This document shows positions 17,834 to 53,221 of a stretch of 64,000 nt of DNA, piece after piece. The position numbers and the translations under genes are program-made. The notes below the pieces were generated by a model. It saw only the letters and a list, made by a program, of their open reading frames with translations. It ran no database searches and had not been told where the DNA came from. Numbering within the stretch: the stretch's first letter is position 1; each line of letters opens with the position of its first letter. Where the stretch lies: IMG/VR virus record IMGVR_UViG_3300024259_000010, positions 171,834 to 235,833 of that record. One strand, 5' to 3'.

Positions 17834-17843
17834 GGAGGAACCC

Positions 17844-18296
17844 ATGCCAGTAAGACAAGTATATAGTGATCTATCTAAGATCATTAATCAAACAATGTGG
17901 ACTGTTCGTGTGGAAGATGGTAAGGATTTACATGTGCCTTATTACTATCGTAAATATCCAGAACGTGCTCCTTTTTATGATTCATGTAATGTGATGTCTA
18001 AGTCTAAACAAACTATCCACAACATGGTTATGATGGTTAGTGCTGACATCACATTTTCAATCCCTGATGAGCAGGATTATCTATCTATCTATAACTACTT
18101 AGAGGAATATACTAAGACACTTAAGAAATATACTGCTAGTGCCTTATCAACTAATCCTAATGTTAGATACTTAAAAAAATGTGAATTAGCATTAAAATTG
18201 TTTAAAGACACTCGTGATTGGAAAGCGAAGAAAGTCACTAATAGAAGCAAGTTTAATGAGCAAACTCAATTAGCAGATGTTCTAAGGAATATCTAG
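17844..18296 (+). CDS. Conserved phiKZ-like protein (gp129-like)
   Basis: Position in the block; D..SIYNYLEEY motif. Confidence 0.45.
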   Translation: MPVRQVYSDLSKIINQTMWTVRVEDGKDLHVPYYYRKYPERAPFYDSCNVMSKSKQTIHNMVMMVSADITFSIPDEQDYLSIYNYLEEYTKTLKKYTASALSTNPNVRYLKKCELALKLFKDTRDWKAKKVTNRSKFNEQTQLADVLRNI

Positions 18297-18308
18297 GAAG
18301 GTATATAA

Positions 18309-19631
18309 ATGCAGAGTCCTCTTTATATGTCGGAATCATTCCACACAGTAATAAAAGAAATAATGGAGTTTAAAGAATCGAATACTTTAACTGTGTCATG
18401 TTCTTTTATGCTGGAGAATGGTGAAACTATTGATTTTACTCCAGGAGTTATTTCACGATTTGAAGTTGAACAAAACTTTTATGGAGCTATTGCTGATACT
18501 GTTACTATTGATATAGCAATGACTACAGCTACATATATGAAGGTAGTTGAATTTAGGCAAAACATAATAGCTAAAATAGATATAGTACAATCTTCTCCGG
18601 CTGGTAAATCTAGAAAAGATTATTTCAAGTCATTAAGATATAATGCGATTCTACTTAACTATGAAGACCCTTCTTTCCATGCACCAATTAAATCATTGGA
18701 ACATGTTGAGTCCGAAGAATCATCTGAGTTTAAAACATTCACTGTAGAATTCGATCTGATACCAATGTCTATTTATAAAGTAAAGAAAAATAAGTTTAAC
18801 TTTATTTTAAATAAGGCTACGATGGAAGATACTATATTAATGATAGCTGACATATTAGGATTTAAAGAAATATATTTAGTACCACCTGATAACACAGTTG
18901 AATATTTGAATGTTGTAATACCACCTTTATTAGAAATGCAAGATATCTTTGATTTCTTACAGGACTCTGATGCATATGGTATTTACGACAATGGTGTAAG
19001 TTATTATATCTATAATGATATATTATATATTTACCCTATGTTTAACAACCTAACTAACACTCCTGGATTTAATGTTTATAGTGTTGGGGTAGGGTCATAT
19101 GCAGGTTCAACTAATTTCTTTAAACTTGATCCTAATGGTGATTTATATGTTATGAACAATAACAAATTAAACATATCAACACCATCGCAAGCTAATGTTG
19201 AAAATATTGGTACTTCAATGATTGTCAATACTCCACATAAACATATTGATGGATCTGGTAAGCTCACAGCAGATGGTTTATTCACTGTTGATCCAGAGTT
19301 TATCACAAGTGTGTCAATTGAGTCAGATCCCTCAGGAGTTATGGGTGAATCATTTACCCAGACTTATGAGACTACTGATAATCTAAATGCAATGCATACT
19401 GTCTTAAGTGGCAACCTATATAAAACAATTGGATTTATATGGCCGTTTGCATTACCATTTATGGTATTACCAACAAGTAATGTCAAGTTTGTTTATGAAG
19501 ACGGATCTCATATCCAGACTCTGGTAGGTTGGTGTACATATGCTAAATATAGTTTTGCCAAAACACAAAGTATTAATAAGGATACATTTGCTTGCAAAGC
19601 AGATATTGTATTAGGTTTATTAACTGATTAA
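18309..19631 (+). CDS. phiKZ-like baseplate/virion protein (gp130-like)
   Basis: Size and synteny. PPDN...YLNVVIPP and YGIYDNGVSYYIY....YIYPMF segments resemble that family. Confidence 0.55.
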   Translation: MQSPLYMSESFHTVIKEIMEFKESNTLTVSCSFMLENGETIDFTPGVISRFEVEQNFYGAIADTVTIDIAMTTATYMKVVEFRQNIIAKIDIVQSSPAGKSRKDYFKSLRYNAILLNYEDPSFHAPIKSLEHVESEESSEFKTFTVEFDLIPMSIYKVKKNKFNFILNKATMEDTILMIADILGFKEIYLVPPDNTVEYLNVVIPPLLEMQDIFDFLQDSDAYGIYDNGVSYYIYNDILYIYPMFNNLTNTPGFNVYSVGVGSYAGSTNFFKLDPNGDLYVMNNNKLNISTPSQANVENIGTSMIVNTPHKHIDGSGKLTADGLFTVDPEFITSVSIESDPSGVMGESFTQTYETTDNLNAMHTVLSGNLYKTIGFIWPFALPFMVLPTSNVKFVYEDGSHIQTLVGWCTYAKYSFAKTQSINKDTFACKADIVLGLLTD

Positions 19632-20367: not shown

Positions 20368-21483
20368 CTATAGACAAAGGGTTTTTAACCGATTTATCTT
20401 ATTTATCAGTAGGTATACTTCCTTAGTCATGTGGGGACTTCTCATATGAAGCTTCCAGTTTTTCCTTGTAAGTATATCTAGATCAATAATGATTTTTTTA
20501 ATGTATTGTGTTTCTTGTTGTTTATCAAAAGTAATGATAAGCATTTGAACTATGATGTTTAATATCTTAGACATCTTTAAGAGATCAACACCTACATAAC
20601 GATTATTCTGTTGAGTACTATGATTGATATTCAAGATATCCATTAGTTCATATATAGACTTACCATTATAGAACTTGGTATTCATTATATCACCAACACG
20701 AATATTACCATTTTTTAATCTATCGAATAGTTCTTTTGTTTCTGTAGTAGAGTTGTTTAACTCTGACATATTCATCATACTGTCATATTTACTATAATCA
20801 GTATCATTGCCAGAAATAACATCTAATAGATAATTAGAAATCCACACATCCAATGCATCATCGTACAAATATGATAAAACATGTTTTAAAATGAAATCAT
20901 CTATAATCTTATTATCTATAGGAATATTATGTTCTCTTAGATAGACTAAGTATTTCATTAGTAGTGCAGATGAGTCAATACATATAAGACTATACTTAGG
21001 TTTGTCTTTCTTGTATACTATTTGTGAACTGTATCCTTGTGGCATGATATTCAATTCTCTGGAATCATTTACTACCAATCTAATTGGTTGCACATGTTTC
21101 CATTTATTCCAATCATCCAGAATATTTACTTCAGTTCCAATTATACCACTAGTTGGTACTACGTATTCAATTTTACTATTGGCAATAAAGGTATCAGATA
21201 AATGCTTTACTCCTGATTCAGTGGAATCAAATTTCCTACTAATCATAGCTGAAGCATTGCTTATATCTTGTGTGTATACTTTAAAGATATCATCGGTTAG
21301 ATATCGTGGCTCACTCATATATTGTAAGAGATATTTAATAAAGACTAATGACGGAGAGGTTTGTACCTGACTCATAACCATCTGTCGTTTATTCGAATCG
21401 ACTCGGCGTTTTGCTGTATCGATAAATTTGTTATATCTTATGATATGACGAGGGGTGCCGTTCATGTTTTGTAATAGAAACAT
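20368..21483 (-). CDS. Conserved Chimalliviridae core protein (phiKZ gp52-like), divergent from chmA
   Basis: W.H..PIRLV.ND and ICIDSSALLMKY segments; head-to-head position next to the chimallin candidate. Confidence 0.5.
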   Translation of the reverse strand: MFLLQNMNGTPRHIIRYNKFIDTAKRRVDSNKRQMVMSQVQTSPSLVFIKYLLQYMSEPRYLTDDIFKVYTQDISNASAMISRKFDSTESGVKHLSDTFIANSKIEYVVPTSGIIGTEVNILDDWNKWKHVQPIRLVVNDSRELNIMPQGYSSQIVYKKDKPKYSLICIDSSALLMKYLVYLREHNIPIDNKIIDDFILKHVLSYLYDDALDVWISNYLLDVISGNDTDYSKYDSMMNMSELNNSTTETKELFDRLKNGNIRVGDIMNTKFYNGKSIYELMDILNINHSTQQNNRYVGVDLLKMSKILNIIVQMLIITFDKQQETQYIKKIIIDLDILTRKNWKLHMRSPHMTKEVYLLINKINRLKTLCL

Positions 21484-21728
21484 ATTCGCATCCTTTTGTT
21501 AAAAAATTATTTACATCATAGAATGATGTTAAAGTAAAGATTAAATATATGCAATAAGTAAATGATCGAAATGAATCATTAGATATTCAAACATATATTA
21601 TATTTTTGTAAGGATCTGATAAACTCTAGAATTATATAAATTGATCTCGGGTACCAATCTATATAAATGTGATTAGCAAGATTCTATTTGTTGCAACAAA
21701 TAAAAGTTAAAGAAGGAGAATAAGTAAT

Positions 21729-23315
21729 ATGACAATGAACATTGACGTTGATAAAGGTGACGAATCGTTCGCACCTGACGCAGAACAGAATCAAACTGGA
21801 GCTGGTACACAACAGGCTGCTCCGAAACAAACTCAAGGATTTGACGGTGCCCCAAGCATCTCTGATATGCTTGCTAAAATTGGTCGCCCATCAGAACTAG
21901 GTACTGAAGGCGTTAAGTACATTGAAACTCTGGCTGACATGCTGAAGAAGAACTTCGGTGAAGGTGTTGCTGTAGCTCATGTACCAAGCCGTATCTTGGA
22001 AGTATATCGTGTATCTACTAAGGATCATACGATCCTCCTTACATTCAGCGAAAGCTACAATGTACCTGTGGACACACTATGCCCTCCAACTGAACAGATC
22101 ATCGAAGCTGCTCAATACATCCGTGATTCCATTGGTGGAGTAATTCTTAATAACATCGTTGTGACCCCTGCGGATTACAAAGAAGTTGGTAAGATGTTCA
22201 CCCATATCACATCTGTATTGAAACTCTCTGGTGGTGAGCTTGGTCAGATTAACATTAACAGCTTCTCCAAAGGCCGTTTCTCAATCAGTACTAACATCAA
22301 TGATGTTCGTGAGAATATCAAGAAGTTCAATCCTAAGGCTCTCATGCCTCGTACGGATATTGGACTTGTGTTGTATCTGACTGAAGAAGTCGGTGCACCT
22401 CAGGGTTACGGTGGACAACCAGTTAAGCGTTCTACGCCTATCTTGGTAATCGGTGGTTATACATCGTTTGTCTCTACTGCTGGTACATCCAACTCATATG
22501 CTATTGGAAACAATGCACCTGGGTACTTGGCTGTTGTGAAAATGACTTCCATTGCTTCTCCTCTGATGAGCACTGAAATGATTTCACTGGCGATCCCATT
22601 AGCTACGGAAGAATTCATCCGTCGCAACGGATGGCTCAAACCTTATACTAAGTTCGGAAAGAAAGATCCGAATCTTGGTTCACTCATCCCTGATGAAAAG
22701 GGCAAGCCGTTTTTCATTGACAATATGACTACCCTGATGGACTTCGCTACGAAGAACATCGCGAAGCCATATCTTGCCATTGATGTAACTGACGGTTATG
22801 CACGAATCCCTGGGATTGAAGGATTGCGCTACGGAACAGATGCAGTACAGAAAGGTATTGCTAACTTCCTTGGAGTACCTGAAAGCCAGACTTCTGGTGA
22901 ACTCGTATACCAACGCTTCTGCGAATACATTGGTGAAATCACTGAGACTGGAACCGATACACGTGAAGTTGATTACATCAACCTGATCGCTGCTGGTGCT
23001 TCAGATCTCAACATGCTTCTTCGTTATCTGTACATCCCATCTGAGCCGCATAAGCGTGCTGAGTTGATTGCACGGAACTACGATATCAAAGCATTGTACA
23101 CTAATGCTACAATCGTTCTTAACGCTGACTATGTTGATAACCTGTCAACTGCAGTTGCTGCTAAGTTCCGCCCATTGTGGGAACAGAACGTTGTAGAAAA
23201 TAACATTGGAGTTCTTGGTACTGGAAACGGTAACAACTTCTCCTCCGGACCTGCGTTCGGAATTGGACCTGTTAGCGGTGGTTGGAATGGATTCACAATG
23301 AATCCGTTTGGTTAA
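21729..23315 (+). CDS. chmA: Chimallin (phage nuclear shell protein), divergent
   Basis: Q/A/T-rich N-tail. Ordered motifs PRTDIGLV, PGYLAVVKMTSI, STEMISLA, GWLKPY, PNLGSL, PYLAIDV, DTREVDYINLIAA and LNADYVDNL align by eye with 201phi2-1 chimallin (PIRADIV, APWVASVVITDV, TPEMYWFA, AWARPF, DIGAL, PVFQIDL, DRRDLDNLAALNA, YNAKFIEAL). G/N-rich tail ending in an aromatic residue; strong RBS and terminator. Confidence 0.72.
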   Translation: MTMNIDVDKGDESFAPDAEQNQTGAGTQQAAPKQTQGFDGAPSISDMLAKIGRPSELGTEGVKYIETLADMLKKNFGEGVAVAHVPSRILEVYRVSTKDHTILLTFSESYNVPVDTLCPPTEQIIEAAQYIRDSIGGVILNNIVVTPADYKEVGKMFTHITSVLKLSGGELGQININSFSKGRFSISTNINDVRENIKKFNPKALMPRTDIGLVLYLTEEVGAPQGYGGQPVKRSTPILVIGGYTSFVSTAGTSNSYAIGNNAPGYLAVVKMTSIASPLMSTEMISLAIPLATEEFIRRNGWLKPYTKFGKKDPNLGSLIPDEKGKPFFIDNMTTLMDFATKNIAKPYLAIDVTDGYARIPGIEGLRYGTDAVQKGIANFLGVPESQTSGELVYQRFCEYIGEITETGTDTREVDYINLIAAGASDLNMLLRYLYIPSEPHKRAELIARNYDIKALYTNATIVLNADYVDNLSTAVAAKFRPLWEQNVVENNIGVLGTGNGNNFSSGPAFGIGPVSGGWNGFTMNPFG

Positions 23316-23350
23316 GCCGAACAGTTCTTCATCGATAAGATGATAAATTA

Positions 23351-23389
23351 AATAAGAGAGTACACGCAAGTGTACTCTCTTATTTTTTT
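23351..23389 (+). terminator. Strong intrinsic terminator after chmA
   Basis: AATAAGAGAGTACAC-GCAA-GTGTACTCTCTTATT plus T-tract. Confidence 0.92.
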
Positions 23390-23418
23390 CTTTAATGTAG
23401 ATCAATCCTTTATGGATA

Positions 23419-23426
23419 TATATTAC
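23419..23426 (+). promoter_or_regulatory. Early promoter TATATTAC
   Basis: Exact motif followed by the GTTAAACCAATTTAA leader and AAAGGA. Confidence 0.75.
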
Positions 23427-23467
23427 TATAATAGTTAAACCAATTTAATATAATAAAGGATAAAAAA

Positions 23468-23722
23468 ATGATCACATTAACTACAGATAAAAGATTGTCA
23501 CGTAAAGAACGTATCAAGATTGAAGCTGAAAAACAGTTAACCAACAATGGTGTTGAGTCTACTGATGAATTCATCACGTACCTTGAAGGTGATATGGATT
23601 TAGAATCCCGTCTTCGTGTAGGTGAGGAGTTGACTAATGCTGTAAAAGAACAGCAGGGTCTAATTGCTACAGTTGCAATGGAAACAGTACAGAATATGTG
23701 TGCTACAGTTAGAAACATTTAG
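23468..23722 (+). CDS. Small early hypothetical protein
   Basis: Behind an early promoter and AAAGGA RBS. Confidence 0.7.
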   Translation: MITLTTDKRLSRKERIKIEAEKQLTNNGVESTDEFITYLEGDMDLESRLRVGEELTNAVKEQQGLIATVAMETVQNMCATVRNI

Positions 23723-23737
23723 TAGGAGGATTACCCC

Positions 23738-23995
23738 ATGTTTAAAGGACATTTTGTTGAGACTAAAGAGAAGAAGCAAGAGTTGGGCACACTTATACCT
23801 AACTTCGATACTACGGTATCTACGAACGTTCCGCCATCATTGGCGAACTGTGCAGAGTTGATTCCAGACTTCATTGTTCCGGAACTTCCAGAAGGAATGA
23901 AAGACTGTGCTGAAAACATTCCAGATATATTCGATACTGATATCGATTGTATTGTAGCAGGTATTAATGAAGCAATTGAAGAAGCAAGCAAATAG
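23738..23995 (+). CDS. Small acidic hypothetical protein with internal CAExIPD repeat
   Basis: AGGAGG RBS; CAELIPDF / CAENIPDI. Confidence 0.65.
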   Translation: MFKGHFVETKEKKQELGTLIPNFDTTVSTNVPPSLANCAELIPDFIVPELPEGMKDCAENIPDIFDTDIDCIVAGINEAIEEASK

Positions 23996-24005
23996 GAGAT
24001 TTAGG

Positions 24006-24317
24006 ATGAAGACCAAGATAGAAGCTAGAGTAGCAGTTGGTAAGACCGAGATCGTTGAATTTGATATCGGTATTTGTGTGTGTCCAAGTTTTAGTAAGAA
24101 ACCATTTTTAGTGGGACTGAAACCACTGTGGAATTTCCCAATGATCGAGTCAAACGATTCTGGTGAATTTCACATCTGTGGTGCGAACTGTGGAACGAAT
24201 AATAAAGAAGGTGTCCATGAGATGATCATGGATGGTGGGACATTTGATGATGAAGGATATTCATCTATTCGTTTGGCCACTGAAGAAGAAATTGAAAAAT
24301 ATAGAACAGAGGATTAA
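24006..24317 (+). CDS. Small hypothetical protein
   Basis: Start moved to ATG 24006 behind AGGAG. Confidence 0.65.
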   Translation: MKTKIEARVAVGKTEIVEFDIGICVCPSFSKKPFLVGLKPLWNFPMIESNDSGEFHICGANCGTNNKEGVHEMIMDGGTFDDEGYSSIRLATEEEIEKYRTED

Positions 24318-24320
24318 ATC

Positions 24321-24485
24321 ATGCCACATGTAAGCAAATTGAGAAAACCAAAAAAGGATCGTACGATCCCAATCTGTTTAGTAGTATTCGTATTTGGAAT
24401 TAGTGTACTTTGTTACATTAGTTCCAACTGTGATTGTAAAGCTTGTACTACACCTGATTCAACTCAGGCTTGTAAGTATCGGTAA
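24321..24485 (+). CDS. 54-aa Cys-rich membrane-anchored protein (absent from the ORF track)
   Basis: GAGGA RBS; MPHVSKLRKPKKDRTIPICLVVFVFGISVLCYISSNCDCKACTTPDSTQACKYR*, followed by a terminator. Confidence 0.6.
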   Translation: MPHVSKLRKPKKDRTIPICLVVFVFGISVLCYISSNCDCKACTTPDSTQACKYR

Positions 24486-24489
24486 AGTA

Positions 24490-24515
24490 AAAAGAACCTT
24501 CGGGTTCTTTTTTTT
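24490..24515 (+). terminator. Intrinsic terminator (UUCG loop)
   Basis: AAAAGAACC-TTCG-GGTTCTTTTTTTT; the same element recurs near 42078. Confidence 0.9.
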
Positions 24516-24532
24516 CATTATACTTATAAACA

Positions 24533-24540
24533 TATATTAC
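24533..24540 (+). promoter_or_regulatory. Early promoter TATATTAC
   Basis: Exact motif directly after the terminator. Confidence 0.7.
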
Positions 24541-24625
24541 TTATAAGAGAGCATTAACACATTAAATTTTAATACAAATAAGACATGATATACACTAATA
24601 ATCATAATATTAAGGAGTAGAATAT

Positions 24626-25770: not shown

Positions 25771-26291
25771 TGAATAATGAAGAAATTGAAAATATAAAAG
25801 ACTTGGCTCATGCACTTGAGGCATCTATTGAAAAAAAGAATACATTAACTACTTTAGAATTTAAAGAATTTCATCCTTTGTTCAAAAATGATACTGATCA
25901 TAACACAGATGAATATAAAGCTCTTTGTTCTAAATGGGGATTCAGAATCTCATTGTATCATCCAGTCAATGTTGTAGTTCCTGGATCTAATGAAGTTGTT
26001 AAAACTCTACCAGCAATGTTTAATAAAGTAGAACTTATTAATAACGTTGGAAATGAAGGTGTAGTTATTAATAAGCTAACTCATGCGATGGCTACTAATC
26101 ATCCATTACGTACTGATGTGGAAGAATCTGTTGATCTATTTAAATTGTCTGTAAAGGCATCCCAAGATAGAGATGCATTAAATGAATCTGCCGCAGCATT
26201 CTCAGATCTTGCTAAAGAGTTTGAGATACCTGATCCAGACCAACAAGATGAAGGTACCAAGAAGATGGTTGAGGATCTTGAGTGGGAATAA
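25770..26291 (+). CDS. Conserved hypothetical protein (core block)
   Basis: TAATG coupling; EFHPLF...KW...PVNVV...LP motif arrangement; acidic C-terminus. Confidence 0.55.
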   Translation: MNNEEIENIKDLAHALEASIEKKNTLTTLEFKEFHPLFKNDTDHNTDEYKALCSKWGFRISLYHPVNVVVPGSNEVVKTLPAMFNKVELINNVGNEGVVINKLTHAMATNHPLRTDVEESVDLFKLSVKASQDRDALNESAAAFSDLAKEFEIPDPDQQDEGTKKMVEDLEWE

Positions 26292-27400
26292 ATATAATCT
26301 CAATAAGTGATGTACATATTGGACTAAGTACATTACCACCAACATATATACCGGATAATTTACGAAAGTATTTATACCCGCATTTAAATGATGAATTAGA
26401 TATTCTATTTATTGTTGGTGATTTTTGGGAAACAATTTTAGACTTCAACGGTCTAGCTGGTTATGAAGCTAGTTGTGTCATTAGTGAGATAATCGAATTA
26501 TCCATTAGACATAATTTTATCATAAGAATATTACAAGGAACATATACTCATGATAGGAGACAGAATCAATTCTTCAAAACGAATAAGAAACTATTAGAAA
26601 CAGATTCTGATAGAGTAAAGGTTTTTGAAAAGATTGATATTGAAGTTATAGATAAGTATGGTATCTCAGTATTATACATACCTGATGATTTACCTACCAA
26701 GAATGTAATGGAAAACATTTTAGAAATTAAGAATACTAATAATATTGGAAAGTTTGATTTTATTCTTAATCATGGATACTTTAAGCATATATTACCTTTA
26801 GGCATACCACATGAACCTCCAAATACTTTGGACGCAGATGTTGTATCTGGTATGGTGAAGGCAACTGTACTGAATGGACATGTGCATACATCCTGTGTAT
26901 ATAAAAAGGTAATAAACAATGGTAGTTTTGACCGGCTACGACACAACGAGGAAGAATCCAAAGGTTTCTTTAAGTTGCATTATATCCCGGAATCAGAAAA
27001 ACTAACCTATGAGTTTATTGAAAATAAAGATGCTGTCATATTTAAAACAATTGGCTTAGCAAAATACAACGATGATATAGACACAGCGATCAATGTGGTT
27101 CGTGATAAAGTTGCTACTATATGTGATAATACGGATAGGAAAGTATTTATCCGTTTAGTTTCTGATTCTGACATAATACGTCAAGGTGTTACTAGGTATT
27201 TAGTAACACGTTTTAACAACGTTGTTGTTAGTTCAAAAAAACATACAAAGAAGAAGAACACCTATGAAGATGAAACAATATATGAAGTGGGTGAACTACC
27301 AAAAATAACTGAAGAGAATATATGTGACATGGTAGTAGCATTTACTAAAGATGAAAAAGTACCTTTATCTAAAGAATATGTTGAAAGTAAATTAAGATGA
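26282..27400 (+). CDS. SbcD/Mre11-like metallophosphoesterase nuclease (phiKZ gp65-like)
   Basis: Calcineurin-like motifs SDVHIG, VGDFW, QGTYTHD, NHGYF and NGHVH. Confidence 0.85.
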   Translation: MGINIISISDVHIGLSTLPPTYIPDNLRKYLYPHLNDELDILFIVGDFWETILDFNGLAGYEASCVISEIIELSIRHNFIIRILQGTYTHDRRQNQFFKTNKKLLETDSDRVKVFEKIDIEVIDKYGISVLYIPDDLPTKNVMENILEIKNTNNIGKFDFILNHGYFKHILPLGIPHEPPNTLDADVVSGMVKATVLNGHVHTSCVYKKVINNGSFDRLRHNEEESKGFFKLHYIPESEKLTYEFIENKDAVIFKTIGLAKYNDDIDTAINVVRDKVATICDNTDRKVFIRLVSDSDIIRQGVTRYLVTRFNNVVVSSKKHTKKKNTYEDETIYEVGELPKITEENICDMVVAFTKDEKVPLSKEYVESKLR

Positions 27401-28260
27401 ACGATATAACGTACGAACGAATGCCAACAGAAAACGCTAACAGTGTATATAGTGTAGGCACCGCCGTTGCGATAAATTCATTTGAACAAAGATACAGTGA
27501 GTATAAATATAATGTTATAGCTATTAATGTAGGAACTCTATTGCGTAATCATGCAACAAAAGATACCTCATTACACGATGTTATAACTATGTTTAATACA
27601 GAAATCTCTGTTATGTTAAATGAAGTTACTTCAATAATGAATAGCAATGGTGCATCGCCGAACTCTTATATACTACTATATGGAATTAATTATAACAGAT
27701 GTTTAAATGAAATACTAGTGAGACCCGAGACTCCAAGTAGGAAACTTATAAACGATGCTACTAATTACATCATTGATCGAAGCAAGGAACTATTTGGTCC
27801 TAAAGGTGAAGGCACCTTTAATGGGATTAAAGTTAAATTCGAATCAATGCAAACAGGTGAGCCGTCTATATATAAAAGACTGTATAACCTAATGTCAAAA
27901 CAAGGAATGCTTCTTAAAGTAATAATGATATCACATTATCCTATCGACTACCATGTTGCTAGATATGTTGATAAGTTTGTATTACTGGAAACACATACTG
28001 GTAAATGGAAATTAATTGATGAACTTAGCGAAAAGATATTCGGTAAGAAATTCATGGAACTCCCATTTATACCATCTACACATTTGTGTTTCGGTGACAA
28101 ACCATTAATAAGTATGAACATTACTTCCAAACAAAAAGATGATCTTTTAGGGACATCTCGAAAACAGGGTTGGAAATTAAAGTCGGCTAATTATATTAAA
28201 GATGAGATCAAACGTAAATATAATTTCCCATCGACTTTATTCCGACAGCTCGGAGATTGA
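27397..28260 (+). CDS. Conserved core protein (phiKZ gp66-like, putative nuclease fold)
   Basis: SVGT..A, INVGTLLRN, SHYPID, LLETHTG and LPF....LCFGD motifs; follows the SbcD-like gene with an ATGA overlap. Confidence 0.6.
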   Translation: MNDITYERMPTENANSVYSVGTAVAINSFEQRYSEYKYNVIAINVGTLLRNHATKDTSLHDVITMFNTEISVMLNEVTSIMNSNGASPNSYILLYGINYNRCLNEILVRPETPSRKLINDATNYIIDRSKELFGPKGEGTFNGIKVKFESMQTGEPSIYKRLYNLMSKQGMLLKVIMISHYPIDYHVARYVDKFVLLETHTGKWKLIDELSEKIFGKKFMELPFIPSTHLCFGDKPLISMNITSKQKDDLLGTSRKQGWKLKSANYIKDEIKRKYNFPSTLFRQLGD

Positions 28261-29389: not shown

Positions 29390-30961
29390 ATGCAATATAT
29401 TCACCAAGTGCGTCCAGATGGTAAAATAGATATGGCATTAGATTTAGGAAACATTAAGATACCTGAATTAGATGGAAAAGAATATCTATTACGATTTGTC
29501 ATTAAGACGTACACTAAAGTATGTAAAAACATTTCAAGTGGAACAGAAGAAAGTTCTTTCAATGCTATTAACAACTTCTTTGATTATATAATTGAAGATG
29601 ACAAAAAGATCATAGCTATTTATTTAGCAACAATGAATCATGTTATTCAAGAACATATGAAGAACGATTCTGCTGATAATATCATGGATCTATCCAAAGA
29701 ACTTGGGCAGATGGTATTGTCATTAAATAATATTATCTCACTGTATGATAAGTTAGTAGAGTTTGCATCTAAGAACGTCCCTATTAATTTGTTTAAAGAA
29801 GCTGGTGCTCGTCCGCAAGATACACCTCTTCATACTTATTATAAGGAAGACATTATTGAACTACTGGCATGTGTATTCATTTCAAAATTACTAGCTCCTA
29901 TATTTGGAACTATAATGAATTATGCTACTAAGTCTGGTATTGAATCACGTATCAAAGAATTACATTGTTTACCTATCGTATCACCACTATATGCAGAAGC
30001 ATGTCCACATGTTATTTATAAGCTGAAGAAATACATTGAACCTATTCTCAATAAAGAGTTTAAGGAAAATATGGATTCGATCAGTATTGGGTTTACTAAG
30101 AACTCAATTGAGAATCATGTGTTTGTGAACCTTATTGTACGGAACTTTATTAATCTCGATATTTATAGAGAGAATAGTAATCATATTACTGCTATCCGAG
30201 TTGGTATTAAGAAATCAATTGATACTCAACGTAGTAACATGAAGACTAATAAGATCATGTTCCGTGAAGACATATCAGCATTGCCTGATGATCAGAAAAG
30301 ATCTCAATTGGAGATCGATAGTGTTATCAGTAAAACAACAGCTGATGTACCTATTATCACTTCTGTATTCATCAACAAGACTGTAAATAGATTCTTAAAG
30401 GAGTATGATATTGAACATGGGATGTACGATGAATGTCTTAGACATAATTATGAATCTGGTGTTACGTATAATATCTTAAACTCTTTGATATTGGAAATCT
30501 TATTTAGCGGTGCATTGAGTGGTACTAAATCATTTAAGTATTTAACCATTCAAGATATAGCAAAATTGGTTACATGTTCACAGTTAATTTGTGCCTCTTT
30601 GAATTATTACGAACTCGCTAGCAGTATGACTGCATTGAGTTCATCTATGATTAAAGAACAAATGACTGATATGGATCAACAGATATTAGTTGGGTATCAA
30701 ACAAAACAACAATATCGTGCATACATTACTAAACTATTGGATTCATCATTAGGACCAGATATGCTAGTTAGCTTCTTTACCATAAGAGCTAAAAGTATCA
30801 TTACGTCAATTACGACGGATACTCATATCTTTAATAATAGTGAACTACTATGGCAACAACAGAAACATGACAATGTTAATGGTACAATAATTCAATTCAC
30901 AGATGGTTATATTCAAGAACTATGTGGATTATTAAACTTATTGTCAATTGAAGAATATTAA
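29390..30961 (+). CDS. Non-virion RNA polymerase promoter-specificity subunit (phiKZ gp68-like)
   Basis: 523 aa, similar in size to gp68. Sits between the ChmC and PicA candidates; ...YYKEDIIELLAC...KLLAPIFG and QRSQLEIDS segments. Confidence 0.6.
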   Translation: MQYIHQVRPDGKIDMALDLGNIKIPELDGKEYLLRFVIKTYTKVCKNISSGTEESSFNAINNFFDYIIEDDKKIIAIYLATMNHVIQEHMKNDSADNIMDLSKELGQMVLSLNNIISLYDKLVEFASKNVPINLFKEAGARPQDTPLHTYYKEDIIELLACVFISKLLAPIFGTIMNYATKSGIESRIKELHCLPIVSPLYAEACPHVIYKLKKYIEPILNKEFKENMDSISIGFTKNSIENHVFVNLIVRNFINLDIYRENSNHITAIRVGIKKSIDTQRSNMKTNKIMFREDISALPDDQKRSQLEIDSVISKTTADVPIITSVFINKTVNRFLKEYDIEHGMYDECLRHNYESGVTYNILNSLILEILFSGALSGTKSFKYLTIQDIAKLVTCSQLICASLNYYELASSMTALSSSMIKEQMTDMDQQILVGYQTKQQYRAYITKLLDSSLGPDMLVSFFTIRAKSIITSITTDTHIFNNSELLWQQQKHDNVNGTIIQFTDGYIQELCGLLNLLSIEEY

Positions 30962-32397: not shown

Positions 32398-33921
32398 ATG
32401 CTTGATATGAATGGCTGTAATATGTTCAATGACGCGATTGGACCTAAAATTAAATTATTCATTTTTACACCAAGGCACCACAATGTATCTGTTATTAGAC
32501 CATATGTGTTTAACTTCACAGAAGATATGGCTGATACATTCCTACAAGGGAATGGTACAACTGATGCAATGATGCGAATGAATGGATTCAATAACAATAG
32601 CTTATGTGATGCAATTATGCCATCTACAAATGGTATTGTATTGAACACAAACGTATTAGATCAATATTATTCATTTGTTTTGATTATTGATGGGGCGGAG
32701 CCAGTAAGATCTATGATCTCATTTGGTGCTCCAAAACGTAGAACTGTTCTTACAGGTTACTTCTACGATGAACCTATCCTACAACATACATTACATTCAT
32801 CTACACCTATTGTGAATCCACAAGCAGTGATGGTGTTTACACATAATACATCAGTGATGTTAAATGCTGGAAACCAAGTTAATGGTAACAGTATCCAGAA
32901 CATTTCATTAACTGCTATGCATGATATCATTCCACAATCTACTGACGCATTAGTAGACCAAGCTCAAGTTGGACAAGGTGGATTGGCATTATGTGACATT
33001 GGTTCTATTACAAATGCATATAAACCAGATACATATAGTGAAGAATCTATATCAACAGGAATACCTCTCAATCTAGCTGGGTTCAAAGGTCAAGCTCCTA
33101 TGTTGCACAATCGTGTTAAGTCACCTAAGCAACAATTAGTTGATATTGCATCTAGTGTTGATCAGGCTGTAAGTATGGCTGGATCAGATCATAAGATCAT
33201 TGGTGGGTTTAATGGATCATTAGTTGGTAATGATTCTCACACTATATTTATGGATAGTTTGTATTCACATTTCCAAAGACCAGATGTTGCACAGATTCAA
33301 CAAGGTATTAATCCTTCTGAACCTGTACAAATTCAACAGTTGATCAATATGTACCCGAACACTGAAGTCATACCGTGTCAAGTTCCATTTGATGCGCAAT
33401 GTGATGTACGTGATCAACGTAGTATGAATATTCAAACTGTATTCTCGTCAATGGCAACTAAAGTTATTAATTCATCTGCAGAATCATTATTACTAGGAAC
33501 GTTATCATTTAGATATTCGTCTTGGAATAAAGCATCTGCTATGGACAGAGGTGGAGCTTGGCACATCATGGGTGCATCCTTAATTATGGGTGACGACGAT
33601 GTATCAGGAAGTATCTTGGATAACTCTATTCAGAAGTTTACAATGGAACTGGAAGCATCATTATTCCCAATCCTACTTAAAGCAGGTGGGGAATTTGATA
33701 TGCAAGTTAATTTTGATTCTACGGGTAATACCGCAGTTGATTTATACTTCATGGATTTTACATCCGATGATAAGAATCAATATTACATTGAGCACAATAG
33801 TCTAGGTGGTATTACATCCCCAGCTGTTGGTTCAAGTGATAATGCTAATCATAATAAAAATCAGTTTGACGCACTCGCTGCTAACCTGGTGAAAAAAGGT
33901 GTTGTTGAGGCACATATTTAA
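32398..33921 (+). CDS. picA: Candidate PicA/Imp1 nuclear protein-import factor (phiKZ gp69-like)
   Basis: N-terminal IRPY.FNF, FVL.I and VLTGY. C-terminal run SSMATKVI..LLLGTLSFR / IQKFTMELEASLF / MQVNFDSTGNTAVDLYF / ITSPAVG follows the pattern I recall for gp69; synteny gp68-(x)-gp69-gp70. Confidence 0.62.
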   Translation: MLDMNGCNMFNDAIGPKIKLFIFTPRHHNVSVIRPYVFNFTEDMADTFLQGNGTTDAMMRMNGFNNNSLCDAIMPSTNGIVLNTNVLDQYYSFVLIIDGAEPVRSMISFGAPKRRTVLTGYFYDEPILQHTLHSSTPIVNPQAVMVFTHNTSVMLNAGNQVNGNSIQNISLTAMHDIIPQSTDALVDQAQVGQGGLALCDIGSITNAYKPDTYSEESISTGIPLNLAGFKGQAPMLHNRVKSPKQQLVDIASSVDQAVSMAGSDHKIIGGFNGSLVGNDSHTIFMDSLYSHFQRPDVAQIQQGINPSEPVQIQQLINMYPNTEVIPCQVPFDAQCDVRDQRSMNIQTVFSSMATKVINSSAESLLLGTLSFRYSSWNKASAMDRGGAWHIMGASLIMGDDDVSGSILDNSIQKFTMELEASLFPILLKAGGEFDMQVNFDSTGNTAVDLYFMDFTSDDKNQYYIEHNSLGGITSPAVGSSDNANHNKNQFDALAANLVKKGVVEAHI

Positions 33922-37022: not shown

Positions 37023-39104
37023 ATGGATGATAATGTAATAGCAGATCCACGATCTATTGCTGATACAAATATTAAACCAGAGGTGATTGGTCTTGAGAAT
37101 CTTCTTAGTCCACTCTGTCAGTTCAACTCATCACAACGTGCAGATATGTTTAGTTCAAATATTTCACAAGCGTTAGTGGTAGATGGATGCGAACCACCAA
37201 GATTAGGATCTGGATTCGAACAGATGATTGGAGATTATTACTTCGATCCAACGCGTCGTAAATCAGAAGCTCAGTTAATTGATGTGATACCAAAATTCGA
37301 AATAGGATTTAGTAGTTCTCATATTTCAGAGTGTCCTAGTAAGACTGTAATACTTTTAACACCAGAAGGTATTGATTGTATTGAGATTAAGAATCATGAA
37401 CAATTATATTCAGGGTTTGGTTACAAGAACAAAATATCACCAGATGCAATTTATCTTAATACGGATGAAGGATCTTTTATTCCTAAAGATATGAAATTTG
37501 CAGAACCACCTAATCACATTGAAGGCGTACATTGTTTAGGCGTTAATGCTCAAGTAGCATATATGGCTATCCCACATGTTGTTCAGGATGCAATTGTTAT
37601 TGGTGAAAGTTATGCTAAAAAGAATGGTCACTTAGGTGTCCATACTGTTAAAGTCTCATTAGATGAAAATGATATTCCAATCAATCTCTATGGAACTGAA
37701 ATAGATCCTAAGATATTTCCAGACATTGGCCAGCAGGTTAATGAAGAAGGTATCTTAATGGCTATCCGAGAAAGCTCGGCATCGTCATTTGCAGATCTTA
37801 CAGAAGCAGCACTTAACCATGTTCAGTTTACAACTGATAAGATTATTAAAGCACCAGCAGGTGCCACTGTTATGGATGTCAAAGTATTCAGCTCAGCTAT
37901 TGCATATAGAAAGCTTGCTGATAATCCTGGTATGATGTCTCAGGTTATTAAATACCAATCACATTATTACAATTACTATAAGCGTATTATCGATTGTTAT
38001 AACAAGATTAAAAATGATGGGCATAAATTAACTCCACGTTTCAATGATCTAGTAACACGAGCAATGTGTTTGAAGAAACCAGCAAACTCAAAAGAGAAAC
38101 TACCACTGATTGATAAACGTGTACCTGTAGGACATTTCGTATTAGAAATTACTTATGGTTATACACGCAATGTATCAAATGGTTTTAAATTTGCTGGACG
38201 TTCTGGTAACAAAGGTGTTATCTCAATTATCTGGCCTGATGAACATATGCCAGTTGATGAACAAGGTATTAGAGCTGATATGATTGTCTCTCCTGAGTCA
38301 GTTGTAAACAGATTGAATCCATCACAGTTATATGAACAGTTCTATAATAGAATGGGTGACTTAATGGCACAGCGAGTTCGTAATGATGAATTCGGTTCCA
38401 TGACAAATACATACAATACTGTCATAAGTTTTCTTAAGGATATTCGTCAAGAGTATGCGAGAGAGATAGATGAGCTATGTGATACTCCAGCAAAGAAGCA
38501 GGCATTAATCGATGATATCAAAGAAGATGGTTTTTATCTGATTATACCCCCATTCTGTAAGGATGTTACATTGTTAAATTGTAAGAATCTAGCGGCTAAG
38601 TACAACTATGTTGAATCACCTGTAACTTACTCGTATCGACAACAAGACGGTACATTGAAAACTGTTACAACTAAGTTTGATCATTGCATTGGATCTATCT
38701 ATATGTACATACTTGGTAAGATACCACAGATGCAGGCTTCTGCATTAGAGATATCGTACATTAATCAATTCGGGTTACCGATTAAAGCAAAGTCAAAGGA
38801 ACTGAAACTACAACATCTGTATACAGCTACACCATTACGTTTTGGTGAAGATGAAGTCAGTATGTTTATTATGGATCTACCTCCTGAAAACATTGCAAGA
38901 TTCTTGGGTATACGTGCTACATGCACATCAGCCACAGAAAAGATGAATCGTGAATTGTTAACGGTCAAACGACCATCTGCTATTAAGCACATTAAGATGT
39001 CTACTAGAGAGATCGTGAAGAATAGTGTTGTGAGTAAGATCTTTAATCATTACATGGGTGTTATAGGATTCGATACAAGCGAAACCTCATCTGGTCGTAA
39101 ATAA
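37023..39104 (+). CDS. Non-virion RNA polymerase beta subunit, C-terminal part (phiKZ gp71-73-like)
   Basis: NSSQRADMFSSNISQA, GVNAQVAYM...QDAIVI, GFKFAGRSGNKGVIS, RADMIVSPESVVNRLNPSQLYEQ, G.IYMY.L.K and PLRFGEDE. Confidence 0.88.
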   Translation: MDDNVIADPRSIADTNIKPEVIGLENLLSPLCQFNSSQRADMFSSNISQALVVDGCEPPRLGSGFEQMIGDYYFDPTRRKSEAQLIDVIPKFEIGFSSSHISECPSKTVILLTPEGIDCIEIKNHEQLYSGFGYKNKISPDAIYLNTDEGSFIPKDMKFAEPPNHIEGVHCLGVNAQVAYMAIPHVVQDAIVIGESYAKKNGHLGVHTVKVSLDENDIPINLYGTEIDPKIFPDIGQQVNEEGILMAIRESSASSFADLTEAALNHVQFTTDKIIKAPAGATVMDVKVFSSAIAYRKLADNPGMMSQVIKYQSHYYNYYKRIIDCYNKIKNDGHKLTPRFNDLVTRAMCLKKPANSKEKLPLIDKRVPVGHFVLEITYGYTRNVSNGFKFAGRSGNKGVISIIWPDEHMPVDEQGIRADMIVSPESVVNRLNPSQLYEQFYNRMGDLMAQRVRNDEFGSMTNTYNTVISFLKDIRQEYAREIDELCDTPAKKQALIDDIKEDGFYLIIPPFCKDVTLLNCKNLAAKYNYVESPVTYSYRQQDGTLKTVTTKFDHCIGSIYMYILGKIPQMQASALEISYINQFGLPIKAKSKELKLQHLYTATPLRFGEDEVSMFIMDLPPENIARFLGIRATCTSATEKMNRELLTVKRPSAIKHIKMSTREIVKNSVVSKIFNHYMGVIGFDTSETSSGRK

Positions 39105-39122
39105 CATTAAGTAAAGGAACAT

Positions 39123-41003
39123 ATGAATAGACAAATAATAACAACTGCTATGTTATCCAATATGGAATACTTAGTGGAAAATGTTAGCAAGCCTAATGTT
39201 ATGATTGACCTACAGTTGGATGATGGTAATAAAATAAAACTATCATCTACTAATGCTATACTACATGGTATTTTATGGATACCTTATTATAGACTAGGTC
39301 GTAATATAACTATTAATGAAATATACCCAATCAAGAACGTGACACCAGAAACGGTCAGTGAAGTACAAACTATTCAATATAGGCATTTGATGGAAGAAGT
39401 CGATATGCCTTACATGGACATTGTGAAGTTATTATGGGATACTGTGATAACCTTATATAAATTCGTTCATGCAAACTTGGGTGAGTACTCCAGATCTATT
39501 AGTTTAATGTCACTAATTCATGTAACTGATAACCCAGCTGTTAAGAAGATTATTGAAACTGACATACCGAGTGAACTTGGTACTAAGGTGGCAGAGATTC
39601 GATTCAATGAGTTATCTAAAGAATTACTTGATGTACTTGAAGACCCTAAAGCAATACCTAATAATCCCATGTTACCATTCATGGATTCAGGTGTGTTTAA
39701 TCGTAATCAGCTACCACAGTTAATGATGGCATATGGAGCACGGTCAGATCTAGATGATCAGATGCAGAAACATGTCATTAATGAATCATCACTGAGTGGA
39801 TTGAAAACAGTCAAAGATTATGCGACAGAAGCATTGAGTGCTAAGAAAACATCATTCTACTTGAAAGATGTTATTAGCAAGACTCAGTACTTTGCTCGTG
39901 TACTTCGATTGAATAATATGCAATTCAGAAAGAAGTATAAAGGTGATTGTGGTAGTACATATGTGGCTCCAATAACAATAGCTACAGGTACTGGTAAGAA
40001 CTTTGTTGATAAAGTGGTGTTCCACCATGGTAAGAAAGTAATCATAACTAAGAATAACTATAAAGAACTAGAGGGACATCGTGTTGAAATGATATCACCT
40101 CTTGGTTGTAAATATCATGATGGTATTTGTGAAAGATGTGCAGGGCGTGCTACAACTAAGCCTTGGGCATTTATGCCAGATATTCATCTAGGTAATTATT
40201 CTAAGTCGAAGCTATGTGCTAAAATATCGCAGAAGGTATTGAGTGCAAAGCATCTTATCAAAACAACTTCAATTGAACCTAAGTTATTTGATTGTGCAAA
40301 ACGATATCTATGTAAGAAATCTGGCAGTACGAATATTATATTCTGTAAAACTGTTAATAGAAGTCTTAAGAATATCGCAGTCGTAGTTCCATATGAAAGT
40401 ATGAAACATATCGGTGATTTGCATTATGGTCAAACTGCTGAGAGCTTTAGTCTGTTGGAACAGATTGCATTTAAGAATACTGCAACTGAACAAATGGATG
40501 AGATTAAGCTTGGTGAACCACAGTTCATGCTGCACTTCTCAGAAGAAATGTTAGAACATATCAAAACTGTATATCCAGATATCGAATTGGTAGATGGTAA
40601 TTATGAGATTCCTATGAAAGGATTTAAAGCAAGTGATCCGTTCATTTCTTATGTCGTAATTAATGATGATATGGTAGCATTCTCTGATCGTGTGAAGAAC
40701 ATGATTAGTAACAACATGGCAAGTTATAATTCAGCATCATCTGCATTGATTGATCTGGCTAATATCATCTATACTAAGACAAACCTAAATATATTCTTTA
40801 TTGAATTAGTAGTTAAGTCTTTGATGAGTAGACCTATCACATGTGATACAGATGTAGACTTCTCGAAATTACGTGAAGGAATCATTGACTCAAGTGTTGC
40901 ATCTAAATTAGCACATGAAGATATTCGTAGATACTTACAACAAGCATCTACTTGTGTCGTTCCAAAAGGTGATAGTCCTATTGACATCTTCTTTGGGTTC
41001 TAA
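39123..41003 (+). CDS. Non-virion RNA polymerase beta' subunit, C-terminal part (phiKZ gp74-like)
   Basis: QLPQLMMAYGARSD, bridge-helix-like ALSAKK...TQYFAR, Zn site DCGS...SPLGC...GICERCAG and trigger-loop-like SQKVLSAKH. Confidence 0.85.
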   Translation: MNRQIITTAMLSNMEYLVENVSKPNVMIDLQLDDGNKIKLSSTNAILHGILWIPYYRLGRNITINEIYPIKNVTPETVSEVQTIQYRHLMEEVDMPYMDIVKLLWDTVITLYKFVHANLGEYSRSISLMSLIHVTDNPAVKKIIETDIPSELGTKVAEIRFNELSKELLDVLEDPKAIPNNPMLPFMDSGVFNRNQLPQLMMAYGARSDLDDQMQKHVINESSLSGLKTVKDYATEALSAKKTSFYLKDVISKTQYFARVLRLNNMQFRKKYKGDCGSTYVAPITIATGTGKNFVDKVVFHHGKKVIITKNNYKELEGHRVEMISPLGCKYHDGICERCAGRATTKPWAFMPDIHLGNYSKSKLCAKISQKVLSAKHLIKTTSIEPKLFDCAKRYLCKKSGSTNIIFCKTVNRSLKNIAVVVPYESMKHIGDLHYGQTAESFSLLEQIAFKNTATEQMDEIKLGEPQFMLHFSEEMLEHIKTVYPDIELVDGNYEIPMKGFKASDPFISYVVINDDMVAFSDRVKNMISNNMASYNSASSALIDLANIIYTKTNLNIFFIELVVKSLMSRPITCDTDVDFSKLREGIIDSSVASKLAHEDIRRYLQQASTCVVPKGDSPIDIFFGF

Positions 41004-52261: not shown

Positions 52262-53221
52262 ATGAATATGAAATTAGGACTAGAATCATTAACGCATGTG
52301 GACCAAAAGAGTTCTATCTCTATGGCGGCTTTTTACAGAGCTGAAGTAGATATGCTTGAATCTTATATTGGGATTGAGTCTATGGTAGGCCAATTGGATA
52401 ACACTATTGAAACCAGAGAGAACATCAGTCACATCAAAGCGACTGTTGAAGCTCATGGTATTGACAACGGATTAATCGCATTGTTCGGCAATGAACTTAG
52501 TGGCATTGCTCCTACGTTCAAGTCTAAAGATGCCAAAGGTGTAACTGTTGCACTCGAAGGTGTTCTTAAAGACGCTGGTACTGCTGTTATTGACTGGATC
52601 AAAAAGATCTGGGCTAAAATTAAAGAATTCTTTGCTAAGACCTTCAGTGCGACTGGACTCGCTCTTAAGATCTATGAAAAAGAACTTGATCGTGTACAGA
52701 AACTTGGTGGCGGTGCTGCTTATAAAGGTAGCTTGAAATCTGAAAAGAAAGTACCTTATTACTACAAGCCTGAAACGATGTCGATTCGCCTGAAAATGGC
52801 TGCGAAATCATTTGAGCTTGCCGAAAAGATTGAAAATGAAATCGGTAGTGGTAAATGGGCTGGAAATGCTTCCTATGAAACTATCAACACTTATGTTGAG
52901 CAGTTTGCTAAAGAAGGTAAAGATGACAAACAGCCTGACTTTGTTACCACAGTTGTTGGTACTACTACTCAAGCATTCGCTGGGTATCGTAAAAACTTAA
53001 CTGAGTACAAAGCTGTTATTAACAAATACAAAGCTCTTCCAGGTAAGATCCGCAGTCACAAGATTTCCAAATTGGAAGTTACTGAAGGCGCGATTGGCGA
53101 TCCTAAGAAAATGTCGTCAGCGGCATCTAAATGTATTAGCTCCGGTATGCGCTATATCGTTCGTGACCTTCATGGGTCCATTTCGGTCTTGCGTAACATC
53201 GGTCCTGCTAAAAAGAAATAA
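52262..53221 (+). CDS. Putative major inner-head protein (phiKZ_IP-like, protease-processed)
   Basis: GLE, GIE and ALE sites in an acidic propeptide; ALE-G then IDWIKKIWAKIKEFF amphipathic helix; TATGTAT upstream. Confidence 0.65.
   Translation: MNMKLGLESLTHVDQKSSISMAAFYRAEVDMLESYIGIESMVGQLDNTIETRENISHIKATVEAHGIDNGLIALFGNELSGIAPTFKSKDAKGVTVALEGVLKDAGTAVIDWIKKIWAKIKEFFAKTFSATGLALKIYEKELDRVQKLGGGAAYKGSLKSEKKVPYYYKPETMSIRLKMAAKSFELAEKIENEIGSGKWAGNASYETINTYVEQFAKEGKDDKQPDFVTTVVGTTTQAFAGYRKNLTEYKAVINKYKALPGKIRSHKISKLEVTEGAIGDPKKMSSAASKCISSGMRYIVRDLHGSISVLRNIGPAKKK

Follow-up and report, generated by a model that had tools for sequence, protein, structure and literature searches.

A compact protein of chimallin fold in the chmA slot of an uncultured phiKZ-like jumbo phage

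The phage nucleus, which shields phage DNA from CRISPR-Cas and restriction enzymes, is defined by the protein chimallin (ChmA), whose tetramers self-assemble into a square (p4) lattice around the phage DNA. Here we analyse a candidate for a compact form of this protein, encoded by an open reading frame (ORF) of 528 amino acids (aa) at positions 21729-23315 of a 64-kb stretch of viral DNA, referred to below as the window. The window is the final 64 kb of the uncultivated virus genome IMG/VR UViG 3300024259_000010 (contig of 235,833 bp), and the sequence inspected amounts to 64 of 236 kb, or 27% of the genome.

The reference Chimalliviridae form a monophyletic clade of 66 phages with a full core genome of 68-72 genes, in which the tubulin PhuZ is an accessory protein found in about two-thirds of the members. 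Reviews and surveys put the length of chimallin at 600-700 aa (PMC12625630; PMC12908238), and surveys detect chimalliviruses with hidden Markov models (HMMs) derived from known proteins of this size (PMC12625630). In 201phi2-1, the protomer consists of an N-terminal segment (NTS, residues 48-61), an N-terminal domain (62-228), a C-terminal domain (229-581) and two C-terminal segments, CTS1 (590-611) and CTS2 (622-631), and GNAT toxins of the AtaT/KacT type are the proposed evolutionary source of the C-terminal domain (PMC9365700). The Goslar chimallin shares only 19% identity with that of 201phi2-1 and keeps the same lattice, and SPN3US gp244, a very divergent chimallin, has 10% identity to the 201phi2-1 protein (PMC9365700).

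An earlier note on this DNA, made from the letters alone, had proposed a compact, highly divergent chimallin and, with it, a probable new lineage of nucleus-forming phages. By the present data, the chmA locus of this phiKZ-like jumbo phage encodes a protein of chimallin fold, and the phage also has genes for the importer PicA and the non-virion RNA polymerase (nvRNAP). We estimate a probability of about 85% that this protein is the major nuclear-shell protein of the uncultured phage, in a compact 528-aa form.

Homology and predicted fold of the compact protein

The gene under study is the following.

21729..23315, + strand: homologue of chimallin (ChmA) in compact form, 528 aa and stop codon, assigned by hhalign, AlphaFold2 modelling and Foldseek

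It starts with ATG and runs as a single uninterrupted 528-aa frame with zero internal stops, and a broken or read-through gene could be ruled out. An alignment of 150 compact-family sequences (A2) was compared by hhalign with one of 40 canonical chimallins including 201phi2-1 gp105 (A4). The two profiles matched with a probability of 96.2% (E 2.3e-9, 357 columns), pairing residues 122-489 of the candidate with residues 165-585 of the 201phi2-1 protein, and a local rerun of the comparison gave 96.9% (E 1.5e-10). The pairing was collinear and comprised about eight conserved blocks (PRxD/PIRxD, ITxI/ITDV, W..PF/WARxF, PNLGxL/DIGAL, PxLAID/PVFQID, DSRxxDYL/DRRDLDxL, P..R and LN..(Y/F)(V/I)..L), bearing out the earlier observation of about eight short motifs in the 201phi2-1 order. 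Half of the columns conserved at 80% or more in the compact family (14 of 28) pair with the same residue, likewise at least 80% conserved, in the canonical chimallins. These pairs are, for the candidate and 201phi2-1, respectively, R208/R263, D210/D265, I272/I329, A292/A353, W302/W362, G317/G380, L319/L382, P347/P416, D352/D421, G402/G485, D410/D495, R412/R497, D415/D500 and L417/L502.

The two families are further joined by bridging proteins of ~620-670 aa, from loci gathered via the neighbouring gene gp55, that match the HMMs of both. The 619-aa chimallin encoded at 5622-7538 of locus L028 (IMGVR_UViG_3300030019_000003) was matched by the compact-family HMM with E 4.6e-22 (73.9 bits) and by the canonical HMM with E 1.5e-19 (65.2 bits), and proteins of six more loci (L017, L027, L030, L029, L026 and L021) matched both models more weakly. 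The L028 protein is a sequence intermediate between the two families, and the gp55 of the same locus sits on a long branch.

An AlphaFold2 model built with a deep alignment reached a mean predicted local distance difference test (pLDDT) value of 87.9 and a predicted template modelling (TM) score of 0.84, and shows the two-domain protomer of chimallin, with an alpha/beta N-terminal and a GNAT-like C-terminal domain. All eight significant Foldseek matches in the PDB were chimallins (E 1.5e-16 to 2.6e-14, TM 0.58-0.63, 530-600 aligned columns), represented by cryo-EM chains from Goslar (7SQT/U/V) and 201phi2-1 (7SQQ/R/S, 8IGG). The ninth match, the best non-chimallin, had an E-value of 0.067. The 16 best matches in BFVD (E 3e-21 to 1.4e-14) were all proteins of 590-691 aa, and no compact form was therefore seen among the BFVD structures searched; seven of them carried an organism name, an uncultured myovirus in one case and a jumbo phage (Eowyn, RSF1, RP12, Noxifer, Stratton) in the other six. 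A first model, computed from 7 sequences and of poor quality (pLDDT 46.7), still matched chimallins only. The profile and structural comparisons that the earlier note had proposed as checks thus both returned chimallin, with no HK97 or other confident fold. No capsid of the HK97 fold was among the significant Foldseek matches in the PDB or BFVD, and an HK97 capsid or other virion protein was rejected on this ground, as was an active GNAT enzyme, with no acetyltransferase structure significant and the toxin KacT at E 0.49. Three independent lines, namely profile-profile comparison, fold and bridging sequences, establish the candidate as a ChmA homologue.

Single-sequence and HMM-to-sequence searches had a different outcome. 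The candidate was unmatched at E<=1 in Pfam, which holds PF25677 (Chimallin_Phikzvirus), and its one match in PHROGs, which hold phrog_4795 ('nuclear shell protein'), was to an unrelated family at chance level (E 0.26). No PDB sequence was matched at E<=10 by phmmer or by hmmsearch with 7- and 150-sequence profiles, BLASTP against phiKZ gp54 gave nothing, and tblastn of the candidate against 50,697 phage records was likewise empty. No counterpart in deposited phages was found by tblastn with three distant family members, and a Pfam scan of 60 members of the family gave no chimallin match. As a positive control, phiKZ gp54 scored 1122 bits on PF25677 and 769 bits on phrog_4795. The candidate is thus a member of the chimallin superfamily that lies outside the curated families PF25677 and phrog_4795. 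A search of the ESM Atlas provided a weak lead, with a chimallin cluster at rank 5 (score 0.45).

The family itself is large. Six close homologues share 51-96% identity with the candidate, and an exhaustive profile search retrieved 404 cluster representatives at E<=1e-3, 200 of them at E<=1e-30, where the 404 may take in intermediate or long forms beyond the 150 inspected. Among the 150 best full-length members, length ranges over 488-616 aa (median 532). At 50% identity the compact family falls into at least 150 clusters, which consist wholly of metagenomic proteins, some on contigs of 103-252 kb. No relatives of the candidate were found in GTDB genome contigs, which therefore gave no host clue. 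In one member, from a 254-kb contig (L018, IMGVR_UViG_3300005282_000007), the compact chimallin gene at 6095-7836 is split over two overlapping frames, which is a frameshift or an assembly error.

Domain boundaries were mapped onto the candidate by hhalign, residues 62, 229 and 581 of 201phi2-1 falling on residues 53 (by greedy extension only), 173 and 485 of the candidate, respectively. The resulting layout is as follows.

21729..21884, + strand: disordered Q/A/T-rich N-tail (aa 1 to ~42) and NTS-like conserved segment (aa ~43-52); pLDDT below 60 at aa 1-40, predicted helix at 44-51
21885..22244, + strand: N-terminal alpha/beta domain (aa ~53-172); boundaries from hhalign, domain covered by the Foldseek alignments of 530-600 columns
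22245..23183, + strand: C-terminal GNAT-like domain (aa ~173-485); overlaps the confident hhalign region (Q122-489/T165-585) and holds the 14 shared conserved residues
23184..23312, + strand: G/N-rich flexible C-tail (aa ~486-528); pLDDT below 60 from aa 489, composition and conservation measured

Compared with 201phi2-1 gp105, the lengths of these parts are:

N-tail plus NTS: 52 aa in the candidate, 61 aa in 201phi2-1, difference -9
N-terminal domain: ~120 aa in the candidate, 167 aa in 201phi2-1, difference -47
C-terminal domain: ~313 aa in the candidate, 353 aa in 201phi2-1, difference -40
C-tail: 43 aa in the candidate, 50 aa in 201phi2-1, difference -7

The claim that the protein is about 100 aa shorter than characterized chimallins therefore holds (528 versus 631 aa for 201phi2-1 gp105; PMC9365700). 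Gaps inside the confidently aligned region are loop trims of 4-6 residues, and the sole larger gap, opposite 201phi2-1 residues 132-149, lies in the low-confidence extension into the N-domain. Given these many small gaps, the loss of ~103 residues represents distributed compaction and not the loss of a module. The suggestion that the deletions could be located on the tetramer was borne out in part: the shortening is spread over many small loop trims, and the N-domain is proportionally the most reduced. Both tails are kept.

The composition of the tails agrees with their earlier description as Q/A/T-rich and G/N-rich, with A6, Q6, D5, G5 and T4 among the first 45 residues and G11, N7 and F4 among the last 40. 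Two conserved aromatic motifs of the C-tail, GNxF...P.FG and W.GF..NPFG, are set apart by G-rich linkers, and the final 6 residues include an aromatic one in 95% of compact-family members, compared with 98% of the canonical proteins. By analogy with the canonical proteins, the two motifs are likely equivalents of CTS1 and CTS2 with a presumed docking role, and this layout is what would be expected if the tail segments still act as staples. Residues ~43-52 are a putative NTS equivalent, with the role described for 201phi2-1 (PMC9365700).

The expression signals of the gene were also examined.

21713..21718, + strand: AAGGAG, a ribosome-binding site seen in the sequence itself, 10 nt ahead of the ATG
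23350..23393, + strand: intrinsic terminator with 16-bp stem, 4-nt loop and T-run; hairpin at 23350-23385, 35 nt past the stop codon

The intact frame and this hairpin agree with the description of a 528-aa ORF with its own strong terminator. The gene has also been said to use more C-ending codons than its neighbours, and the measured fraction was 0.235, the window maximum, against 0.114 +/- 0.026 in the 39 other ORFs (z 4.7). Among two-fold codons, NNC/(NNC+NNT) was 0.58 in the candidate and 0.25 +/- 0.07 elsewhere, and GC content was 44.6% compared with 34.7%. The second-strongest C-ending bias in the window (C3 0.19; NNC fraction 0.49) is that of the gene at 52262-53221, which encodes an internal head protein of the phiKZ type (PF12699, phiKZ_IP) and whose bias is consistent with high expression. 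As the runner-up is another abundant protein, the pattern fits translational selection.

The chmA locus and its neighbourhood

Gene order in the window is collinear with phiKZ gp54-gp75. The candidate occupies the gp54 slot and is followed by homologues of gp65 (start at 26282), gp66 (27391), gp68 (29390), gp69 (32398), gp71-73 (37023), gp74 (39123) and gp75 (43779). Neighbours of the candidate are listed here.

26282..28260, + strand: homologues of phiKZ gp65 (SbcD-like) and gp66; phmmer E 4e-40 and 5e-6, the gp65 homologue also matching phrog_100
29390..30961, + strand: homologue of phiKZ gp68; both proteins match phrog_3209, the window ORF with E 4.7e-18 and gp68 with E 5e-183
32398..33921, + strand: homologue of PicA/Imp1 (phiKZ gp69), 507 aa; hhalign of A8 against A9
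37023..41003, + strand: nvRNAP beta (gp71-73-like, fused) and beta' C-part (gp74-like); phrog_3295 E 1e-134 and phrog_3015 E 2e-68, phmmer positive against gp71, gp73 and gp74
20368..21483, - strand: divergently transcribed 371-aa gene next to chmA, conserved in all five compact contigs compared

In phiKZ, gp68 is known as an nvRNAP subunit. The ORF at 37023-39104 (693 aa) matches both gp71 and gp73, which phiKZ encodes in separate genes, and nvRNAP beta is therefore fused or unsplit here. The assignment of gp69 matters because this protein, named PicA, imports proteins into the phage nucleus and is reported to be conserved wherever phages encode ChmA (PMC11087766). Pairwise BLAST of the 32398-33921 ORF against gp69 was negative, and the ORF had no Pfam or PHROG match, whereas hhalign of its family alignment (A8) against an alignment of gp69 from nine phages (A9) gave a probability of 97.6% (E 2.8e-12, 438 columns). 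Directly after PicA, the window carries an ORF of 425 aa (33939-35216), as phiKZ carries gp70 (433 aa, L002:31327-32625), and both proteins have P/Q/M/G-rich low-complexity tails; a pairwise comparison of the two found no significant sequence similarity.

In phiKZ, chmA (gp54) is followed by gp55, the N-part of nvRNAP beta'. The gene just downstream of the compact chmA in loci L001, L007, L008 and L009 is a gp55 homologue (BLASTP E 1e-20 to 1e-47 against phiKZ gp55), and the compact chmA lies directly upstream of gp55 in the relatives L001, L004-L015 and L018. In every locus with a gp55 homologue (L001, L002, L004-L030), one chimallin, compact or long and never both, is encoded directly upstream. 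A single-protein query with gp55 found no relative in IMG/VR, and the scan with a gp55 alignment did not return the window's own contig. The region 23316-24625 of the window holds only short ORFs (84, 85 and 116 aa), without similarity to the downstream regions of the relatives. On the other side of chmA, the copies of the 371-aa gene in the window, L001, L007, L008 and L009 are mutually homologous (E 1e-9 to 1e-102). This gene shows weak similarity to phiKZ gp52 (best BLASTP E-value 4.7e-4, hhalign probability 10%), and a link between the two is only suggestive.

A promoter-like element lies in the gap between the two divergent genes.

21568..21625, + strand: promoter-like AT-rich element with core TATATTAT at 21594-21601, 135 nt upstream of the start codon of the candidate

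The flanks of this element resemble those of the TATATTAC subclass found upstream of the gp68, PicA and nvRNAP-beta genes. The TATATTAC motif is enriched in the window, with 19 matches compared with 9.0 +/- 3.0 expected and 16 of the 19 on the + strand; sites on this strand include those at 14210, 23419, 24533, 25311, 29340, 32321, 36966, 41078, 42126, 42246, 45336, 58684 and 59111, with the variant at 21594. The core is part of a conserved element of ~55 nt located 45-93 nt upstream of many ORF starts, which occurs in two subclasses. One reads 'ttgtagttca...gataTATATTACt...aaactaatttaaa' and the other 'ttcatt..ataaacaTATATTACatat.tgt.aagg', the latter preceding the gp68, PicA and nvRNAP-beta genes and, in the form TATATTAT, the chimallin gene. 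The subclasses likely represent two promoter classes of the phage RNA polymerase.

Further products of the window include split multisubunit RNA polymerase subunits (matching phrog_3295 and phrog_3015), head-tail proteins (PF24214/PF24215, at 16229-17833), UvsX, ribonucleotide reductase, SbcD and a helicase. Several traits of the Chimalliviridae are thereby present: a jumbo genome (235,833 bp) with phiKZ-type virion genes (PF12699, PF24214/PF24215), phage-encoded multisubunit RNA polymerase genes (phrog_3295, phrog_3015, phrog_3209; matches to phiKZ gp71, gp73 and gp74) and the core gene PicA (ORF 32398-33921, by profile-profile match). The RNA polymerase beta-like protein has only 25-30% identity to that of any deposited phage (29-30% for PBS1/AR9, ~27% for phiKZ-likes), and megablast of 15 kb of the window against deposited phages gave nothing. 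Judged from these sequences, the source genome is that of a deep-branching, uncultured jumbo phage with a multisubunit RNA polymerase, and phiKZ synteny, the PicA homologue and the nvRNAP genes support a predicted life style of the chimallivirus type.

Proposed role and competing explanations

If the candidate is the shell protein, the compact chimallin would be made early and in very large amounts, given its strong ribosome-binding site, dedicated terminator and extreme codon bias. By analogy with 201phi2-1 and Goslar, protomers would tetramerize through the N-terminal segment, and segments of the C-tail would dock on neighbouring protomers, stitching the tetramers into a flexible two-dimensional lattice. 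The closed lattice would surround the replicating phage DNA and keep host nucleases out, while mRNA would leave it and selected proteins would enter via PicA. The ~103-residue shortening of the protomer is made up of many small loop trims and a reduced N-domain.

Several observations weigh against this assignment. The function of the candidate is read wholly from homology and context, its identity to the solved chimallins is only 12-15%, and HMM-to-sequence methods (PF25677, phrog_4795, and phmmer and hmmsearch against the PDB at E<=10) all fail on it. A TM score of ~0.6 denotes the same fold with substantial differences, and the sequence alignment has low confidence over the N-domain (aa 1-121). 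No gp39/PhuZ match was present among the window ORFs, and no tubulin Pfam match among the ORFs scanned against Pfam. A gp55 homologue is neither adjacent to the candidate nor found anywhere in the 64-kb window, and because of this absence gp55 must have been relocated or replaced in the source genome. Inspection covered 64 of 236 kb and a second, canonical chimallin could lie elsewhere, the IMG/VR scan that found none being pattern-limited.

Three other explanations share what probability the shell protein leaves. The candidate could be a chimallin paralogue with an accessory role, as a minor shell component or adaptor, and a long canonical ChmA from another part of the 236-kb genome would then build the shell. 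The visible part of the contig is 64 kb and lacks the gp55 neighbour that accompanies chmA in other loci, and both facts would suit such a paralogue. We nevertheless hold it improbable: the candidate fills the orthologous chmA slot, exactly one chimallin-type gene precedes gp55 in every gp55-bearing locus examined, the gp55 tree groups the compact-type loci in a single clade, no compact-type contig is among the 20 from IMG/VR with canonical chimallin, and the extreme codon bias suits a very abundant protein.

A marginally smaller chance is given to a chimallin fold that forms no closed compartment, such as a partial scaffold, a cytoplasmic lattice or some other structural element, the lineage then replicating with no true nucleus. 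The protein is 103 residues shorter, and the domain that is reduced is the one that receives the NTS for tetramer contacts in canonical chimallin; the family is known from sequence alone, and the RNA polymerase beta is about as far from that of the chimallin-less PBS1/AR9 (29-30%) as from the phiKZ-likes (~27%). Against such a scaffold, at least 150 divergent clusters conserve the core residues and both flexible tails with their terminal aromatic motifs, the nvRNAP genes are kept, and so is a PicA homologue, whose sole known role is import across the shell (PMC11087766). That the resemblance to chimallin is spurious and the gene encodes an unrelated abundant virion protein (capsid or sheath) or an active GNAT acetyltransferase or toxin is hardly credible. 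The C-domain of chimallin is itself GNAT-like in fold (PMC9365700) and head-tail genes lie nearby (16229-19631), but no HK97, sheath or acetyltransferase structure was significant (best non-chimallin PDB match E 0.067, KacT E 0.49), and full-length two-domain matches in the PDB and BFVD were to chimallins only.

The compact lineage among known chimallins

When gp55 sequences from 24 loci were placed in an IQ-TREE phylogeny, the 10 compact and the 14 long loci fell on opposite sides of one branch, supported at 100/100; the tree is unrooted, and sister and nested placements of the compact clade are both compatible with it. Chimallin lengths are dichotomous across the tree (506-585 aa versus 619-671 aa), and the 20 IMG/VR contigs in which a pattern-limited scan found canonical chimallin include 0 of the compact type. 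The compact form is a fixed trait of a distinct phage lineage. The earlier proposals of a compact, highly divergent chimallin (now matched at a profile-profile probability of 96-97% and by Foldseek to chimallins only) and of a new nucleus-forming lineage (its own 100/100 branch, with phiKZ synteny, the PicA homologue and the nvRNAP genes in support) are both strengthened by these data. Its further idea, a lattice of altered geometry or pores in an uncharacterised host group, is speculative.

A further step, which we regard as tentative and on balance unlikely, is that compact chimallin marks a large, wholly uncultured sister lineage of the Chimalliviridae, in which the protomer is minimal, its N-domain reduced and its staples shorter, and gives a lattice of different lattice constant, pore size or curvature range. 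If so, such a shell would show the least that a phage nucleus requires, and the lineage could bring low-GC host groups, from which no nucleus-forming phages are known, into the range of these phages.

The compact family is missed by standard chimallin models and is without a detectable counterpart in 50,697 deposited phage genomes. As it fails the known HMMs and yet numbers at least 150 clusters, the diversity of nucleus-forming phages may considerably exceed current counts. A protomer ~16% smaller that keeps 14 conserved core residues shows which parts of chimallin are dispensable and is a useful comparative target in studies of lattice, pore and import. The compact-family profile, adjacency to gp55 and co-occurrence with PicA together provide a practical annotation route for these genomes.

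Among the known systems, 201phi2-1 gp105 (7SQQ, 7SQR, 7SQS, 8IGG) and phiKZ gp54 have the same two-domain fold as the candidate (TM 0.59-0.63) and share with it a collinear profile alignment, the 14 core residues, and disordered low-complexity tails with terminal aromatic motifs. The candidate, in addition, takes the same slot as phiKZ gp54 relative to gp65-75 and, in its compact relatives, relative to gp55. It differs in length (528 aa versus 631 aa for gp105 and 626 aa for gp54) and in sequence, with 12-13% identity; PF25677 and phrog_4795 recognise phiKZ gp54 and miss the candidate, and gp55 adjoins chmA in phiKZ but is not adjacent in the source genome of the candidate. Goslar gp189 (7SQT, 7SQU, 7SQV) is the best PDB match (E 1.5e-16, TM 0.58), whereas in sequence this 631-aa protein is 13-15% identical to the candidate and unmatched by the compact-family profile at E<=10. 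SPN3US gp244 provides a precedent for extreme divergence with the square lattice kept, although it comes from a cultured Salmonella phage, unlike the candidate. With the AtaT/KacT GNAT toxins, the candidate has in common a C-domain distantly GNAT-like in topology, but it has no significant structural match to them (KacT E 0.49) and no Pfam acetyltransferase match. A preprint on structure clustering of huge-phage proteins reported one chimallin cluster comprising five sequence clusters (10.1101/2025.02.27.640493); no compact clade is described there, and the cluster may already hold compact proteins. Chimallin, even in very divergent form, was thus already known, and what is new here is not a new type of system but a minimal chimallin specific to one clade, in a large lineage of uncultured phages.

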